Of a stretch of DNA of 64,000 nucleotides, positions 55,801 through 64,000 are shown piece by piece. The position numbers and the translations under genes were made by a program. How positions within the stretch are numbered: the stretch's first letter is position 1; each line of letters opens with the position of its first letter. Origin of the DNA: Oopsacas minuta (lineage: Eukaryota; Animalia; Porifera); the NCBI GenBank assembly GCA_024704765.1, contig JAKMXF010000334.1, positions 1 to 64,000 of the forward strand. Direction: 5' to 3'. The notes under the pieces were generated by a model. The model had not been told where the DNA came from. It saw only the letters and a program-made list of their open reading frames with translations, and did no database searches.

Positions 55801-58800
55801 TTTTAACGCAGCTAGATATTCTAAGTGCGTTAATTGACGCGCTTAACGCGCGCTTTGGGGGAAACACTGTCCCAAAGTATCTATATGATAATCCTTTATC
55901 CATATTCTTATATACCAGAAATCTGGATAAAGATATTCGTCAGATAGTACATGGTGAAGCTGGAGTAGGATATGAAGGAGAAGTGGTGAGTATATTCTGT
56001 AGTGAATTTGAAAACAAATATTAGTATACTTTTGTAGCTTAAAGTTATGGTCAGGTATTGAATTAATTCAGTATGTACTTCTATGGTGGATAATATAGTA
56101 CGTGGTTCTTTATTCAATACAATATTTGCAATTCGTCTATTTGCTATAAGCAATTTTTCATGTATTTGTTGTATAGTAAATACTAATACACATTATAAAT
56201 TCTCGGATTAACAATGTATGCAATATATGATTTGCTTTTAGACAAACTCCATTGTATTTCTGTTGGACAATAGTCGATGGTGGAATTAGAGACCTCATAT
56301 TTTAGAAACATACAATCTTTGTCAATTTCTATCTACCATCATATACATACATTGATATCATTTAGGCATTATCTGAGGCAAGAGATGCAATCAACAAGCT
56401 ATTTTCGAGAATAAAAGACATAAAGGAAAAAGCAGAAACTTCTGAGAAAATGGTTTGTATATGCTTAATGAATGCACACATCTTCTGATAGTAAATATTG
56501 TCTGGGTGAACTATTCCATCCCTCGCCTACTAGTTGTTAGTGCTAATCGCTTATAAGAACACCCTTAGGATAGTAAAACATGTTTTTATAATAAGTAGAG
56601 CTCCGCCTTAAACATTTAACACACGATCCGATAGCATCTGGGATTTTACTGTCACTAGAAAAATCCTAGCAAAATCAACTTTCAATATCAGTTTAGGGTG
56701 ATTGGTGAGTTAATACAAGTTTGCATTTTAATAACCAGTTGTAATGTCGAAAAGAAAATCTAAATTAGATTTCCCATTATCTGTTACTTCATTTGTTTCA
56801 ATGAAGATGCATACATGTGAGTTAATTACATTGGAACCTTCTACAACACTCCCATATCATGAGTACTTGAAATTTGAGCTACAAAACGGATCACAAGATC
56901 TAACTAATATATCTTTCAATGAAGAAAGTATTAGATATTGTATAGCCTTCAAATTTGGTGACATAACTTCTACCAGGATGATTCTGTAATACAGAGTTTC
57001 ATGAAACAGTAGCTCGAATGTTTATGAGAAATCTCGCATAATTATCAACTTAAGTATAGAATACGTATATGATCATTTTGAAATTTAGTCAAGTCTTCGC
57101 TTGTCAAATTGTGAACTTCCGTTATATCGAACACGGATATTTCGAAATACCCGCTCATATCGAAGTCCGAAATTGTACAAATATGGTCCCAAACCGTCCA
57201 ATTCACATTAATTCGTCAGTTATATCGTACTCCGATTTTATCGTTATTTTTCGCGGTCCCTTAAGCTTCGATAAAACATGAATTTACTGTACAACTTCGA
57301 GCTAAACCTATTGCTATAACCCATTGACAAGAGAGTAGTATTCACCATTAATTCTGTTTATAGGTTAAAGCCATTACAAAAGAAATTAAGGAACTCGATA
57401 CAGCCAAAACTAATCTAACATTCTCTATTACAACTTTAGAGAATCTCTCAATGCTAGTTCGTTCTATTGAAGATTTATCGTGAGTTATCTCCTCGATAAA
57501 TGAGTTGAAATATCACATTTGATTCAACTAAAGTGCTAAACCTTATTTTGCAATCAGACAAACGGATAGACAGAGTCGAATAAACAGACGAACAAACAAA
57601 CAATATAAGGGAACAACTGAGATTTTTAAAATACATTACACGTAATTATGTAATTATGTAATTATGTAATTATGTATATTCTTTATATAGCAAATGGTTT
57701 GTCGTATGGAAATGTCCTATACAACATCGAAAGGTTACTTTTCAAAAAATCCTTTGCTATTTGAACAATATTTTGAGTGAAATTATATTTACTAAATTAA
57801 GATTCATGTTGTAGGCAGTGGCGCTGCCAGGTTTTTGTCACGGTGGTGTCGGCCATGCGGGTGGTGCGAGCAGTGTTGAATTGTATTGAGCTATTAAGTA
57901 ATTATTTGTCAAGTAACTCAAGAAAGAGATTAATTAGTTCATAGATTGTCCTAAATCTAAACACTACTGCCTGAAACCATACAGAAATTATATTTATCAA
58001 ATATTCACTACCATTTTACTAATTTCAGCTTACATTCGTCTGAACAAGTTCAGATGATCCGCATCAGCCCCGCAACATCTTGGCTACACCTCTGGTTGTA
58101 GGTACGTATCTGCATCAATGTACACCAGTTAAAGTATACGTATTTTAATTTATGCCCAGGATCTGTTATTTAAATTTGATTATTCTTAATACGTACTATC
58201 GTAATTTGTCCTACTTGCCACCAATCACGAGGAAGAATATTATACTTGTTATGGGTTATGAAAAAATCTAACTGATGTAGCCACAATATATTATTGTCCA
58301 GTTTAAACAAATTGGACACTGCACAATAAGAGTGTTTACTAGCTTCAATACTATTTTCAATTCATGAACATTTATTTCAAAGGCATTTATTGAAACTAAA
58401 AGTGAAACATGAGCGGATTCATTTCTCGTATTTGGCCAAACCTCTCTCATATTGAAACATCATATTTCAAAACATATTTTGATTGCATAACAACCTTCAT
58501 GATTCGGTAGACGTTTATTAATTAAACAAAATTATAGTTTAGTGCTTTCATTTTGTAATTGAATTTCTTCTAGAAATTGGTACTTTTTCATATCTTATAT
58601 TGCTAATTTTGACACGAATATATTCTATTAAATCATTTTAAATATTCTAAGAATGTAATTCCTTAAAATTTATTTCTCCTTATTTTATATAAATGTCAAT
58701 ATCAGATTATTAAACAATAAATTAGATTTGACCATATAAGTCAAGCTCGTTTAACTCAACTATATTTCTAAGAAATCAATCTTCTATGTATAGCAATTTG

Positions 58801-60060
58801 CTTATACGATTGATTCCTTATACTTTACTATTAATAATTCAATATATATTACTCACTTGCAATTACTGTAACATAATACTACAAATGCACACATTTGCGA
58901 ACATAACTCATTTGAAATATATATTAAGTACAGGCGTTAAATTTCTAGGCAGAATATTGCTCAGAAAAAGTACTTAGAGGTTGAGAAGATTCTTGAAAGA
59001 ATTGGCTCTGTAAGTGATACGTTCAAACTTTTTACAGATATCAAAGAAATTACAGAATTGTTACAAAGGTAATAATAAATATTCAATATTAAGGTCATAT
59101 AATTATGAGAAATGAAAGTATTTTTATTCACAGGAAACTTACATCCTGGTATTAATATGATTATTTATACTGATAGCTTATACTCTTCGCTCCCAGCCTT
59201 CCTCACAGTTTGACCTGTTATTTGTACATTTTAGTCCGGGTTTAGCTCATCTAAACTGAAGAATATTGTCTATACTATGTCTGTGTACTGCTTGGAATAC
59301 ACATGGCATAATCGTATTTGTAGACCAGTAGATTTACAGGATAACGGGAATAGTTAAACTATTTCCTTTTTGTATTACGTATGTGTTTAAGATTCAGTAA
59401 AATGAAAAATGAACTGCATGCCCCATAAATTATATCTGGATTACTCTTAATGAGTAACAAGGTATTGAATAAGAGTTGTCTAATAATTAGACAAAACCTA
59501 TCATACACAACATAACTAGCAGGGATTTAGTGAAAGTCAAGGGAGAAATTGAACTCCATCCAGGCAGTAAAGTCATTAAGGTTTGCACTTTGGAGGTAAA
59601 TGAGCACTGACAATTTCTGAATGTTCATAAGGCAGTCAGACTACTATAATGTTGACCATTATCTAGGTGGTTGGAGGCGCCTACAAGTGTCAGTTCAGCA
59701 GTACATAAATTTCCGACCCTACATTGTTGACAGATCAAGTATAAAGTTAATATATTGGGCTTTGGAAATTTGCATGAATTTGGCATTAAATATTCAAGTT
59801 TGTGTGGCATGAACTTTTTTGGAACATCACCTGGCAACCTGCGACCATGAGACTCTAATGTTTCCGTCCAAAAAGTGTCACGCGAGGATAGTTCATACTA
59901 GATAAAGTGTGACATGGATTCCTATTAGTATTTGAAAAACCTAATATTCTTAACACTTCACCTATCTCTCTCTATATTTAGTGTTACTCAAATACAAAAT
60001 GATTTAAAAATACAAATAAAGAAGGATTTTGAAGAAGGAACAACCACAAAAGGAATAAAG
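46846..60060 (+). CDS. VPS53: Vacuolar protein sorting 53 (GARP/EARP subunit), 5' part. Exons 46846-46974, 55269-55349, 55413-55462, 55919-55985, 56366-56452, 57364-57479, 58949-59068 and 59982-60060 (243 codons); it presumably continues past the window.
   Basis: Spliced translation LMFPEEVEVALEK|LFPDMDPLCARKFNEIDFINKEFPTEQ|SLANIDDFMSRMKLEIR|NLDKDIRQIV...|ALSEARDAINKLFSRIKDIKEKAETSEKM|VKAITKEIKELDTAKTNLTFSITTLENL follows human [21 protein letters not shown]...INTLFPTEQSLANIDEV...[42 protein letters not shown]. All junctions are GT-AG and in phase. Confidence 0.9.
47749..49449 (+). CDS. RFWD3: E3 ubiquitin ligase RFWD3 (RING + coiled coil + WD40), intronless, nested in VPS53 intron 1
   Basis: [34 protein letters not shown]...KCPQC, then WD40 segments [13 protein letters not shown] and [17 protein letters not shown]. 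Confidence 0.92.
   Translation: [566 protein letters not shown]
49604..49712. mobile_element. Truncated MITE family B copy abutting the NHL pseudogene
   Basis: cagtaagaccgccacaaacg ... ctttgtggaagttcatttatatggcactaggaattcg, shared with the copy at 25535. Confidence 0.6.
49719..50426 (+). pseudogene. 5'-truncated, frameshifted NHL-repeat gene fragment
   Basis: The + frame reads ITGEYIGTFCKGQ...VYISDARLHCIFEF...RVGKVGSG, shifts near 49890, then reads FLYPRSITIAHNEDIFVTDSHDNRVVVMTP...IIMGDCRANNIKVF. No start codon or coiled coil upstream. Confidence 0.75.
50827..51500 (-). pseudogene. zf-3CxxC + death-fold-like gene, copy 1, with a 1-nt frameshift near 51250
   Basis: Paralogous to 52299 and 54175. 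The minus strand reads tgt ggttatttgaatgg (14 nt) where copy 2 has tgt gatttgtttgaatgg (15 nt). Confidence 0.8.
51723..52130. mobile_element. Tigger/pogo-like MITE between zf-3CxxC copies 1 and 2
   Basis: tacagtcgaacctccaagatcc ... ggatctgaggttcgacagta. Confidence 0.65.
52299..52973 (-). CDS. zf-3CxxC (ZCCHC24/ZAR1/RTP-type) zinc finger + death-fold-like C-terminus, copy 2, 224 aa
   Basis: KRFFGHYQCKICRNKWTSGYSW...ECKTC...PHLSSLCEKC...HC follows the ZCCHC24-type pattern FGEYRCPKCNRKWMSGNSW...CIKC...HPQHLCEKC. ATG at 52973. Confidence 0.85.
   Translation of the reverse strand: MASKYPGRSRKKRKSKQQELIPIYYRIPGENEEIVSGYLVKEPLEDGIDPKRFFGHYQCKICRNKWTSGYSWQGYQLECKTCDLFEWPTKVYHLENKDDDFVMKKPHLSSLCEKCQDDGVHCLTGLALKPDTDKKRKTKLHNDDDYSHRNQFMIHFGKQLGLHKQEIKIEGQFIQELFDNLWDTLNKKDKSEFKEALKITAAKWQQRNREDLADICKDVLRQTR
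54175..54840 (-). CDS. zf-3CxxC + death-fold-like protein, copy 3, 221 aa
   Basis: Same architecture as copy 2: KRFFGHYQCENCSSRWTSGYAW...CKKC...PHLTDLCEKC. ATG at 54840. Confidence 0.85.
   Translation of the reverse strand: MASRLSGRSRKKSESAEHELIPIYYRLPGGVEIVSGYLEKRRLKKGTQSKRFFGHYQCENCSSRWTSGYAWQGYQLECKKCHFFEWPTKVFHLENVSDDHEMKTPHLTDLCEKCQKDGVHCLTGHMLNHNVHIIPEFDGTRLKENNKYMIHFGKQLGLDKYDIVIEPQFIQNLFDNLWDSLSRECKSEFKEALKIASIKWKQKNRVDISDKCMDVLRQTTY
55704..55869. mobile_element. hAT-like MITE in VPS53 intron 3
   Basis: TIR cagtgtttccc / gggaaacactg. Flanks tcctgaaa / tcccaaag match at 5 of 8 positions. Confidence 0.65.
57107..57291. mobile_element. MITE family A, longer copy, in VPS53 intron 5
   Basis: Contains ccgttatatcgaacacggata, aaattgtacaaatatggtcccaaaccgt and gcggtcccttaagcttcgata, all shared with other family A copies. 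Confidence 0.7.
57642..57676. repeat. Tandem repeat (GTAATTAT)x4
   Basis: Seen directly. Confidence 0.85.
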
Positions 60061-60211
60061 GTACTTAAACTTTCCCAAATCCATCAATTCTCATATAATA
60101 TTTGCTTATAATACAAGTATACTTGCTTAGAAACTTTCGATGATAACTTAACTTCTTACTGAAGTTTCTAAGCAGGTCAAGGTGATCTGAAACTATCCCT
60201 ATAATTATATT

Positions 60212-60598
60212 TACAGTCACATCACTCATATCGAAATAAATATCTCAATCCCTTGCGCTTCGATAACCCCTGATTCCTTATCGGGCCTACATGTTAACTG
60301 TATTCTTATTACAGAGATTCTACTTTATAGTGTCAGCGTATACAGAATACAGTGAACCTCGTTAATACGAACACCAACGGAGTTTCATGTTAACCAGACT
60401 GATACCAATTCCACTGTAGGGACCTGATAATGTGTATACACAGTTATACGAATTATGGATAAGACTAACTTATTTTTCGTCTTGTCCGTAAATTCTTATA
60501 ACTGAGTTTGTCATAAAAGGTAACTCACGATAAGGAGTCTCGTTTTATCGAAGCACACCGGATTGAGATATTAACCTTGATATGAGTGATGAAGTGTA
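60212..60598. mobile_element. Composite MITE with ~75-bp imperfect inverted ends
   Basis: catcactcatatcgaaataaatatctcaatcc...gcttcgataa...ccttatcg is mirrored by cgataagg...ttatcgaagc...ggattgagatatt...gatatgagtgatg. Confidence 0.65.
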
Positions 60599-60881
60599 AT
60601 TATAAGAAAAGTTCATATAAGCTAATTTATGCATACACAGATTGATTTCTGAAAACTATACAAAAGCTTAACGCTCTATTAGGGTTGTGATAAGTATTAG
60701 GGTTATGATAATATTGAAAGTAATGGAATTCTGGTAATTAATTAAGGAACTTAACTCTTAATAGTGAATCTGGAAAGAAAATACATTCTAAGCGAATTTA
60801 ACATTTGAGTTAATATAAATAGCAACTGAGAAAATAAACAAAACAACAAACAAGTAAATAAATAAATTGAAAATAAATATA

Positions 60882-61202
60882 ATGGAATATTCAACATACG
60901 AATCAATTGACATTAATCAAATGAGTTACTCAATGGAGCATATTTGCGAAATGCCTATTCCTGAGTTAAATGAACTCATTTTCAAAGCGAATATGACACA
61001 AAAAGAGAAATTGGATATAAAGAATAGAAGAAAATATTACAAAATCAACAAAGCTTCTTTGAAACAGCAACTAAATCGTCTTACACAGGAAATAACTGAA
61101 TTGGAGAGGGTAAAGAAGGAATTGGAAGATGAGAGAATTCAATATAGAAGAGATATACTTTTCTACAAGATGGAGTTGAAGAAGGGGAACACAGTATATT
61201 GA
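60882..61202 (+). CDS. Small Maf/CNC-like bZIP protein with degenerate basic region, copy 1 (106 aa from the ATG at 60882)
   Basis: YSMEHICEMPIPELNELIF resembles the Maf extended homology region LSDDELVSMSVRELNQHL. It is followed by IKNRRK and the zipper TQEITELERVKKEL (MafK TQKEELERQRVEL). Confidence 0.7.
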   Translation: MEYSTYESIDINQMSYSMEHICEMPIPELNELIFKANMTQKEKLDIKNRRKYYKINKASLKQQLNRLTQEITELERVKKELEDERIQYRRDILFYKMELKKGNTVY

Positions 61203-61620
61203 GAATTCTTCCCTTCAAAACTCGCAGTGCAAGACCAGGCAACTTCAACTTAGCAAAAAGCGCAATAATTCAGGATTATCGCATTATCTCTGATCAAACA
61301 ATTTTGCCTCAATTTTTGCTGTTCTTAGATTTGTTATCAATTTATAATCGTTTACAATAAATAAGCCAGCTTCTATTTTATACATAAACATACACCTTAT
61401 GAAGTGAACTGAGTAGAATTGTATGCCAACATACAAATTTACTGAAAGTGTTTGTAAAAGGTATACACTTACTTGCAACTTAAGGAAATTCCACTCTTAT
61501 AGATTTCGGCTATTTGTATCTATGACAGAACCATTTCTCTGGCAAAATGAAAGTTTGGGAGTCAAACATTCCCAACAACACTCAGGGAGGATGGAGCGAA
61601 TAATTGTCTTAAAAAGTGAT

Positions 61621-62373
61621 CAGGGCCGTGCCAGTAATGTAATCTGCTCAGGTCAAACCTAGGTATAATTTTCCAGACCAGGTTTTGACCAGGTGACAGC
61701 CTGGGCACTGGAAATAGTGGATACATTTAGAAGGTAGATAGTTGGCAACTATAGTATATGTTCGCATGTAATAAAATCGATAAGAATATACGTAGTTCCA
61801 CATCGCTTGTTTGTTCTAATATATAACTATGAGGTTTTGAATTAATATCATATAATATTTTAAAACTGATGTGCATCAAAAATGGAATAATACTTTTTCC
61901 GTATCTTTTAATGATTCAGAGAATAATCACACCTCATTGGGAGCTGTCACGGAACTGGTCCGGGACCAGTTATGGCCAACTATAACTGGTCCATCGCGCT
62001 GTAGTAGCCCCAGAATATACGCCCACTAGAATATGCCTCTCGGGGTTATATTCTGGGCTTACCCACTTCATACCAGTGTATATTTGAGGACGGGGTATAA
62101 TCTCGGCTGTTACACCAGAAAGATCTATCATGATCAGTATTGGCGCCCACTAAACTACCACTTAGTTATGACTGTCCATAAATCTGTTCTAAGTATAATA
62201 AGTGAATGGAAATCCCTAAAGAGACCTTCCATACAGCCTGGCCAGTTATGGATGCCACAACTGGCCCGAGCCGGACAAGTTATGGGCCGGGCCAGTTGTA
62301 TCATAACAGAGCCCTGATGTTTACTCTAATTAGGTTTGACCTGGTCAGAGATAATTAGGCTCGCATGGCCCTG
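61621..62373. mobile_element. Non-autonomous TIR element (hAT-like CAGGGCC ends) interrupting the left palindrome arm; it contains a probable nested element at ~61946-62308
   Basis: Left end cagggccgtgccag...caggtcaaaccta; reverse complement of the right end cagggccatgcgag...caggtcaaaccta. Confidence 0.75.
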
Positions 62374-63065
62374 GAAATGCTCATTCAATCAATAAATAAT
62401 GAATGAGTTTGCCTTGTTGAGCAACAGTATTGGACATGCATATTCAATATTGGCAACACTAAGAATATATACTCAGGACATTAAAGTAGTGTGCTTCAAA
62501 GAGCGACGCTCCTACTTGTTTGTAAACAATTTACAAATTTCATGGTTATTCTGAATTTCAATATTAGGTTCAGTGTTGCAATAATGAATATGTTTGCTGT
62601 ATCCAATTCTGTTGTTTGATCTAAACCATATTCTTGATTGAATGAGCATTTCTTTTTAAGACAATTATTCGCTCCATCCTCCCTGAGTGTTGTTGGGAAT
62701 GTTTGACTCCCAAACTTTCATTTTGCCAGAGAAATGGTTCTGTCATAGATACAAATAGCCGAAATCTATAAGAGTGGAATTTCCTTAAGTTGCAAGTAAG
62801 TGTATACCTTTTACAAACACTTTCAGTAAATTTGTATGTTGGCATACAATTCTACTCAGTTCACTTCATAAGGTGTGTGTTTATGTATAAAATAGAAGCT
62901 GGCTTATTTATTGTAAACGATTATAAATTGATAACAAATCTAAGAACAGCAAAAATTGAGGCAAAATTGTTTGATCAGAGATAATGCGATAATCCTGAAT
63001 TATTGCGCTTTTTGCTAAGTTGAAGTTGCCTGGTCTTGCACTGCGAGTTTTGAAGGGAAGAATTC

Positions 63066-63386
63066 TCAATATACTGTGTTCCCCTTCTTCAACTCCATCT
63101 TGTAGAAAAGTATATCTCTTCTATATTGAATTCTCTCATCTTCCAATTCCTTCTTTACCCTCTCCAATTCAGTTATTTCCTGTGTAAGACGATTTAGTTG
63201 CTGTTTCAAAGAAGCTTTGTTGATTTTGTAATATTTTCTTCTATTCTTTATATCCAATTTCTCTTTTTGTGTCATATTCGCTTTGAAAATGAGTTCATTT
63301 AACTCAGGAATAGGCATTTCGCAAATATGCTCCATTGAGTAACTCATTTGATTAATGTCAATTGATTCGTATGTTGAATATTCCAT
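63066..63386 (-). CDS. Small Maf/CNC-like bZIP protein, copy 2 (identical protein, convergent orientation)
   Basis: Mirror image of 60882-61202 within the inverted repeat. Confidence 0.7.
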   Translation of the reverse strand: MEYSTYESIDINQMSYSMEHICEMPIPELNELIFKANMTQKEKLDIKNRRKYYKINKASLKQQLNRLTQEITELERVKKELEDERIQYRRDILFYKMELKKGNTVY

Positions 63387-64000
63387 TATATTTATTTTCA
63401 ATTTATTTATTTACTTGTTTGTTGTTTTGTTTATTTTCTCAGTTGCTATTTATATTAACTCAAATGTTAAATTCGCTTAGAATGTATTTTCTTTCCAGAT
63501 TCACTATTAAGAGTTAAGTTCCTTAATTAATTACCAGAATTCCATTACTTTCAATATTATCATAACCCTAATAGAAAGTGCTTAATACTGTACTCAGAAT
63601 TGTTGGATAGATTTAGACACGTGATACGTGAGCCTCTCTTCCATAAAAATACTTTCAATAATCTATGAATACAAATTCACAGCTTTCACGACATTTAACT
63701 TCTAAGCATATCTTTTGTTTATTTTGAGATCTTACACGATTGATCGGGGATTTTGTATTAATTCACATTTATTATGATAAATTCTAATTTTTGAGGATTA
63801 TTTCTTTGGAATTTTTGTTTGATTTAACCAACTTTGTGATTTGTATACAGGACATGATACATGTCTGATGATATACCGGTAGTATGCAATCTAGCATTTT
63901 CTATTCGAAATGTATTTCCCTACAAACAACTGGGTAATGTACAAGTATGCATTTGAAGATACTTCACGAAGAACTGAAAATATTATTGTCAAATGGTTCA

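Follow-up and report, generated by a model that had tools for sequence, protein, structure and literature searches.

Near-identical arms of a gene-bearing palindrome in a VPS53 intron of the glass sponge Oopsacas minuta are probably maintained by gene conversion

The first 64,000 nt of contig JAKMXF010000334.1 of the glass sponge Oopsacas minuta, hereafter called the window, contain a palindrome that carries a gene for a small Maf-like protein in each arm and lies within an intron of VPS53. The palindrome is probably old, and gene conversion from arm to arm would homogenise its outer 922 bp, up to a barrier formed by a transposon, TE1, that interrupts one of the arms. The probability of this reading is estimated at roughly two in three. 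Two observations favour it: the arms are almost identical outside TE1 and diverged inside it, and the switch between these two states falls at the insertion site of TE1. All genome-wide searches were made in the 61.46-Mb, 365-scaffold assembly of O. minuta, where the contig is designated C334 and the window corresponds to its positions 1-64000.

Results

Two near-identical arms enclose a transposon and a diverged inner palindrome

The two arms (Table 1) form the sole long inverted repeat of the whole window and are separated by 1035 nt. Base-by-base comparison found 921 of 922 positions identical, with zero indels, and the sole mismatch lies in the 3' non-coding part. These values agree with the initial annotation of this DNA, which had described 922-bp arms with no net indel and one mismatch, each with an identical Maf-like open reading frame (ORF) in convergent orientation; the two ORFs indeed lie on opposite strands and encode the same protein. 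In the same base-by-base comparison, identity was found to break off sharply at both outer edges. No residual homology was detected beyond them, as up to 600 nt of flank aligned no better than shuffled sequence, and an outward-decayed palindrome was rejected on these scores. Both arms are single-locus, with no further occurrence across the assembly, and the 59-64 kb region contains no N.

The coordinates given in the initial annotation stand, but the segment between the arms is not a plain spacer. The apparent 1035-nt spacer is made up of the 753-nt transposon TE1, a diverged continuation of the palindrome (inner arms of 76-82 nt) and a true centre of 111 nt, which holds a fragment of a second repeat, TE2.

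The ends of TE1 and its 5-nt target duplications were defined from eight other copies. At least 60 fragments of the family are found elsewhere in the genome, with 66-93% identity, and the closest copies are just 81-84% identical over ~450-550 nt. The tree of the family is star-like, with terminal branches of 0.08-0.21 and a branch of 0.10 changes per site for the copy in the window, so that the family looks old, as if derived from one old burst. The left copy of the target duplication is decayed at two of five bases, adjacent to each other. From the state of these sites, TE1 appears to have inserted into a pre-existing palindrome, and in one arm only, since the right arm keeps an intact and empty GAAAT target.

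Past TE1, the first 14 nt of the inner arms match perfectly, and decay follows. Their alignment comprises 70 aligned columns with nine mismatches (~13%) and 18 gap columns; its score of 65 compares with -5 +/- 8 for shuffled sequences, and the Kimura two-parameter distance is 0.14 (bootstrap 0.06-0.25). This divergence was measured without the TE2 fragment. The family of TE2 has at least 27 other copies in the genome, with a common core of ~240 nt and homology of up to ~690 nt between some copies, and some of them carry additional tandem copies of the 12-nt motif upstream; the palindrome centre holds its first 71 nt only. A reading of the 277-nt middle as a diverged palindrome that lacks a spacer and is centred on 62506 was rejected, because 62495-62565 is a one-sided fragment of that dispersed repeat. 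Rfam models had no match in 60-64 kb at E <= 1.

Table 1. Features of the palindrome and its surroundings, and of other Maf gene pairs in the genome (positions are those of contig C334 unless a locus name is given)
Feature	Position	Strand	Remarks
VPS53 exon directly upstream (exon 8 in the initial annotation)	59982-60060	+	donor AAG|gt at 60060/60061; from reading frame and splice sites; too short to score alone
Tandem near-copy of the left arm's initial 18 nt	60677-60694	+	18 nt, 2 mismatches; absent from the right end
Left arm, near-identical outer part	60695-61616	+	922 nt; inverted-repeat search and base-by-base comparison
TATAAA, putative core promoter	60814-60819	+	68 nt before the ATG; mirror 63449-63454; motif scan
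Maf-like small bZIP gene, left copy	60882-61202	+	106 aa plus stop, intronless
AATAAA, putative poly(A) signal	61356-61361	+	154 nt past the stop; mirror 62907-62912
Sole arm-to-arm mismatch	61391 / 62877		T at 61391 versus the complement of G at 62877; 3' non-coding part
Target-site duplication, left copy	61616-61620	+	now GTGAT
TE1, non-autonomous DNA transposon	61621-62373	+	753 nt; ~40-nt terminal inverted repeats starting CAGGGCC; left arm only
Target-site duplication, right copy	62374-62378	+	GAAAT
Left inner arm, diverged continuation of the palindrome	62379-62460	+	aligned to the reverse complement of 62572-62647
True central spacer	62461-62571		111 nt
TE2 fragment, 5'-terminal	62495-62565	+	71 nt; GC-rich 12-nt palindromic motif at its start; nhmmer E 1.4e-15, on one strand only
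Right inner arm, diverged	62572-62647	-	same alignment as left inner arm
Unoccupied TE1 target site, right arm	62648-62652	-	reads GAAAT
Right arm, near-identical outer part	62652-63573	-	922 nt; inverted-repeat search and base-by-base comparison
Maf-like small bZIP gene, right copy	63066-63386	-	protein identical to left copy
Candidate next VPS53 exon	65345-65409	+	acceptor tatag|G, donor GAG|gt; peptide LLSDACRVVKLSDPSLR
Maf palindrome on C55	L035:1919-5781		935-nt arms, 99%; convergent
Maf palindrome on C321	L036:1966-3395		517-nt arms, 99%; divergent
Maf palindrome on C310	L037:1932-3579		495 + 238 nt, 100% and 99%; convergent
Maf palindrome on C345	L038:2010-5878		536-nt arms, 98%; divergent
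Older Maf pair on C362	L040:1475-4769

Arm identity ends where the transposon is inserted

The outer and inner parts of the palindrome differ sharply in divergence: one difference in 922 positions (0.1%) in the former, as against nine in 70 aligned columns, plus the 18 gap columns, in the latter (Fisher p = 2.5e-10). Even at 6%, the lower bootstrap bound for the inner arms, the 601 non-coding positions of the arm should contain ~36 differences, and one is seen. Purifying selection is excluded as the cause of ~600 identical non-coding nucleotides, because the protein itself differs by ~20% between species. Identity gives way to divergence at the insertion site of TE1: the arms match up to 61616, and the next two bases are those of the decayed target duplication. 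Conversion would explain the presence of TE1 at this boundary, since a heterology of 753 nt would limit conversion inwards.

The transposon also provides a clock. If exchange between the inner arms ended when TE1 arrived, they should now differ by ~0.20 (2 x 0.10), and the observed 0.14 (0.06-0.25) is compatible with this value. Because the TE1 branch fits the inner-arm divergence in this way, the palindrome is probably old. The initial annotation had proposed a very recent duplication or gene conversion. Of these two, the ~13% of inner mismatches and the old transposon at the identity boundary favour conversion and speak against a very recent duplication. Near-identical palindromes (98-100%) with Maf genes on four other contigs of this genome (C55, C321, C310 and C345) also count for conversion.

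We infer conversion as the process, and the following order of events, from the anatomy of the locus and the divergence contrast, which are observed directly. The arms of the original palindrome would have measured ~1.0 kb and reached nearly to its axis. A cut-and-paste transposon of 753 nt would then have entered the left arm, 87 nt from its inner end. Intrachromosomal gene conversion between the arms would since then have overwritten the outer 922 nt, as far as the transposon, and the inner stubs, isolated by 753 nt of heterology, would have decayed freely alongside it. The outcome would be two permanently identical copies of a regulator gene, with whatever benefit two copies might bring, and the transposon-derived spacer would keep the palindrome from a perfect, fragile state.

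Several points weigh against this scenario. GC enrichment, as expected of GC-biased conversion, is absent from the arms, whose GC content is 0.307 compared to 0.338 and 0.304 in the flanks; such enrichment is common in conversion-homogenised palindromes, but not obligatory. A cut-and-paste element takes mutations acquired earlier along to a new site, and the TE1 branch therefore sets only a loose bound on the residence time of the transposon. The decayed target duplication could instead reflect an untidy insertion, and the inner-arm sample is small, with its 70 aligned columns. The outer edges are sharp, with no eroded zone, and a young duplication would show the same. Finally, where two repeat copies differ only sparsely, the differences can be lost through De Bruijn bulge removal and through polishing with multi-mapping reads. 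The genome of O. minuta was built by hybrid SPAdes (k up to 99), followed by SSPACE, Pilon and GapFiller (PMC10280926). As such a pipeline can collapse sparse repeat differences, the arm identity is perhaps overstated, and its true value may be about 99% or more instead of 99.9%.

Other origins of the near identity

The most serious competitor, although an unlikely one, is a recent origin in two steps. Short inverted repeats are seeds of palindromic duplication through fold-back priming; here, an old inverted repeat of ~80 nt (62379-62460 / 62572-62647) would have stood beside a single-copy gene, a fold-back or template switch would have copied 0.9 kb in inverted orientation, and the transposon would have come later. 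The single difference in 922 positions and the sharp outer edges without eroded homology fit such an event, as does the perfect 14-nt match at the outer end of the inner arms. However, TE1 must then have inserted within a very short time, whereas its family, with terminal branches of 0.08-0.21 and without any close copy, seems to have died out long ago. It must also have landed by chance at most 18 nt from the boundary between old and new sequence, which over an arm of ~940 nt has a chance of about 1 in 25. Had TE1 already been in place, the fold-back would have left it in both arms, whereas the right arm has an empty target. The existence of several near-identical Maf palindromes is likewise a better fit for a continuing process than for many simultaneous recent events.

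It is rather improbable that the near identity is a product of the assembly. The palindrome would exist in that case, with arms that truly differ by up to a few percent and were collapsed by the assembler or polisher; in the extreme form, the whole structure would be a fold-back mis-join. The pipeline described above makes a collapse conceivable. However, all four arm ends adjoin different unique sequence (the left flank, TE1, the diverged inner arm and the right flank), and because both ends of both arms are anchored in this manner, two copies of the arm must exist. The locus is internal to a contig of 282,663 nt, which continues for more than 200 kb with further VPS53 exons, and its asymmetric 1035-nt middle, free of N, is unlike the fold-back of a chimeric read. 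A divergence of ~13% would not collapse at k = 99. Since a collapse hides sparse differences only, the contrast between outer and inner arms stands.

That the 2.9-kb unit is a mobile DNA transposon of the long terminal inverted repeat or foldback type with a captured host gene, as its long inverted termini, sharp ends and the 18-nt motif repeated at its left tip might suggest, is close to refuted: the arms occur nowhere else in the genome, so the unit is a single copy and not mobile, its flanks have no target-site duplication, ORF and Pfam searches gave no transposase, and the gene that it carries has conserved orthologues in other assemblies. Conversion between the arms of an old palindrome is kept as the preferred explanation.

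The palindrome lies between VPS53 exons

The VPS53 model was checked exon by exon from matches to the Pfam family Vps53_N. Upstream of the palindrome, on the + strand, Vps53_N positions 85-128 are matched at 57361-57492 and positions 127-163 at 58941-59069. Downstream, on the same strand, positions 215-242 are matched at ~67289-67372, positions 242-288 at ~67854-67997 and positions 283-326 at 68339-68596. The exon directly upstream, which ends at 60060, comprises 26 codons, and together with the candidate exon found beyond the palindrome it fills the gap in Vps53_N arithmetically. Open segments in 60061-60694 gave no Vps53 signal.

The palindrome is intronic because there are Vps53_N matches on both sides of it and a candidate for the next exon at 65345. 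It takes up 2.9 kb of a 5.3-kb VPS53 intron, and its left arm begins 635 nt past the donor at 60060/60061. Both the intronic location and this distance had been claimed in the initial annotation, for which a next VPS53 exon downstream of the palindrome was critical; that exon is now placed there. Nesting of genes is ordinary in glass sponges, with ~2400 nested genes reported for Aphrocallistes vastus (PMC10282587).

Each arm carries a gene for a divergent Maf-type protein

The start codon of the arm-borne gene is the ATG that gives 106 aa, as indicated by its orthologues, and not the TTG that would give 111 aa. Each arm is plausibly a whole transcription unit, since a TATAAA motif precedes the ATG and an AATAAA motif follows the stop. 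Eight full-length orthologous proteins, 77-84% identical, were found in ENA and Logan assemblies; their alignment has an invariant core of ~40 residues and variable termini. Judged from these eight sequences and their invariant core, the ORF is a real and constrained gene.

Standard profile searches did not place this protein. Pfam gave no family for it or for two other ORFs of the region, and no basic leucine zipper (bZIP) match at E <= 1; the locus was not among the matches of PF03131 in a scan of the whole genome. PDB sequences, searched with a profile, yielded no significant match, with Nrf2 at just E 7.5, and no relative came to light when JGI metagenomes were scanned with the protein alignment. 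When the orthologue alignment was compared by hhalign with four in-genome paralogues, three of which score above the Pfam bZIP_Maf cut-off, the match had a probability of 96.4% and an E value of 1e-9 over 87 columns. The AlphaFold model of the protein (predicted local distance difference test, pLDDT, of 86) has two short helices and a long one (residues 18-23, 26-35 and 40-104). Foldseek ranked MafG, MafA, MafB, Nrf2 or NF-E2 at all of the first 11 places, with probabilities of up to 0.98 and, the protein being so short and helical, E values of only 0.2-1, and the ESM Atlas neighbours of the protein are Maf clusters. By these profile and fold comparisons, the 106-aa protein groups with the Maf/CNC bZIPs and is a divergent Maf-type small bZIP, so that the Maf-like identity first proposed for the ORF is borne out by hhalign and by the top 11 Foldseek matches.

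The protein shares with Maf/CNC bZIPs (PF03131; small Mafs such as MafG) the order of the fold, with ancillary helices followed by one long helix, and it resembles small Mafs in size and in having no other domain. Its sequence displays a heptad register of leucines (L60, L67, L74, L81). It differs from Maf/CNC bZIPs in scoring below Pfam detection, and from its Maf paralogues in a basic region with fewer basic residues and a one-residue length difference. In the alignments, the Lys-Asn-Arg start of this region is retained, the subsequent Cys/Ser-Arg is missing and several basic residues are substituted. The region is invariant among the orthologues, and hence constrained yet atypical. DNA binding by the protein is doubtful, because its basic region is atypical and lacks the Cys/Ser-Arg of the usual signature.

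Two of the proteins from relatives, P0004 and P0011, are one residue apart and have their longest contig, of 622,609 nt, in common. A third, P0009, comes from another assembly and has 131 aa: its N-terminal 65 residues are as in P0002, after which 3 residues are deleted and the frame changes. In its species, it probably represents a second copy in decay. The shared contig of P0004 and P0011, together with the frameshifted P0009, suggests that relatives also may have two copies of the gene.

Other Maf palindromes in the O. minuta genome

The PF03131 scan gave 92 matches at E <= 1, of which ~80 exceed the cut-off; the majority are open frames of 100-170 aa that lack introns. In a survey of 20 holozoan genomes, with no hexactinellid among them, 446 bZIPs were counted for all families together (PMC4736632), and the number of loci found here greatly exceeds the bZIP complements given there for other animals. 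The glass sponge seems to have undergone a large lineage-specific expansion of tiny Maf-type genes, undescribed so far.

Five further contigs (C55, C321, C310, C345 and C362) bear Maf palindromes with arms of 0.3-0.9 kb and 92-100% identity (Table 1), and there is an older Maf pair on C341 too. Within each of the pairs on C55, C321 and C310, the two proteins are identical. The palindromes on C55, C321, C310 and C345 resemble the one in the window: they are in the same genome, encode tiny Maf-type bZIPs of 106-171 aa, and have 0.5-0.9-kb arms at 98-100% identity. However, their proteins are merely 27-41% identical to the 106-aa protein and their arms have no DNA similarity with those in the window, where alone the position in a VPS53 intron and a transposon at the identity boundary were found.

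Among neighbouring Maf pairs that are directly oriented, identity does not exceed 86-91% over 200-300 nt. Pairs of at least 98% identity were found in 5 of 14 inverted and in 0 of 8 direct cases, a difference that is not significant (Fisher p = 0.12); a bias in orientation is suggestive only.

In the palindrome on C310 (C310:601219-602294), the gene is a truncated copy of the one on C55. It has stops in the N-terminal part, and over its C-terminal 67 aa it is almost the same as the C55 protein. Either the pseudogenes of this palindrome are still being homogenised, or an entire palindrome was duplicated.

Discussion

Palindromes of primate and mouse sex chromosomes (human Y P1-P8 and X palindromes) are described as more than 99% identical through arm-to-arm conversion (PMC8600007, PMC8327919, PMC8981503, bioRxiv 10.1101/800185). 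The palindrome in the window is similar in having gene-bearing inverted arms, a non-duplicated spacer and an identity beyond what the age of the structure would predict, and the same mechanism is proposed for it. It differs in its arms, of 0.9 kb as compared with more than 8-10 kb, in its position within an intron of another gene, in a sponge without known sex chromosomes, and in the absence of a GC-bias signature. In addition, its age is estimated from an internal clock, TE1 and the inner stubs, and not from orthologous palindromes. The locus can be viewed as a miniature, autosomal and intron-nested counterpart of these structures, with a neat internal clock and no new mechanism. Gene conversion being a well-known process, it is a clean but fairly ordinary case.

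Its interest would lie in being a compact and internally dated example of concerted evolution between palindrome arms, in which TE1 acts both as barrier to conversion and as clock, so that near-identity would be seen not to mean youth without recourse to an outgroup. For annotation, it is a warning that near-identical inverted pairs in O. minuta should not by default be taken as recent duplicates or assembly errors. It adds one nested gene pair to a corrected VPS53 model, and points to an expansion of tiny Maf-type bZIPs of which several members are arranged as palindromes.

A role of the palindrome at the RNA level can be imagined; the initial annotation had suggested a dsRNA hairpin that might give rise to siRNA or undergo A-to-I editing. 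Hairpin-RNA (hpRNA) loci of Drosophila yield endogenous small interfering RNAs, and long intronic inverted repeats can be edited by ADAR. The present locus is like these in having a long and almost perfect inverted repeat that would lie within one transcript, here the VPS53 pre-mRNA. It is unlike the hpRNA loci in that its arms are intact, conserved, protein-coding genes and not decayed gene fragments. The two Maf-like mRNAs are predicted to be identical sense RNAs and not complementary, because either gene is provided with an AATAAA of its own, 154 nt past the stop. A hairpin would need one transcript across both arms, and the VPS53 pre-mRNA would be such a transcript. The genome encodes ADAR-like deaminases (2 loci), several full-length Piwi/Argonaute proteins and RNase III proteins with paired domains. 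It is a long shot that transcription of VPS53 produces a 0.9-kb hairpin, processed by Dicer- or ADAR-type enzymes to edited RNA or to small RNAs antisense to the Maf-like mRNA, which would couple the expression of the putative regulator to VPS53 transcription, and that the recurrence of inverted pairs (at least five tiny-Maf loci) reflects selection for hairpin-forming or self-correcting pairs.

Two minor observations concern the DNA around the left arm tip. Both 18-nt units at this tip, the tandem near-copy and the start of the arm, include TTAGGG, which is the metazoan telomere hexamer. Upstream of the palindrome, in the same intron, a 64-nt inverted repeat of 81% identity (60220-60283 / 60528-60591, 244 nt apart) is probably another small transposon.

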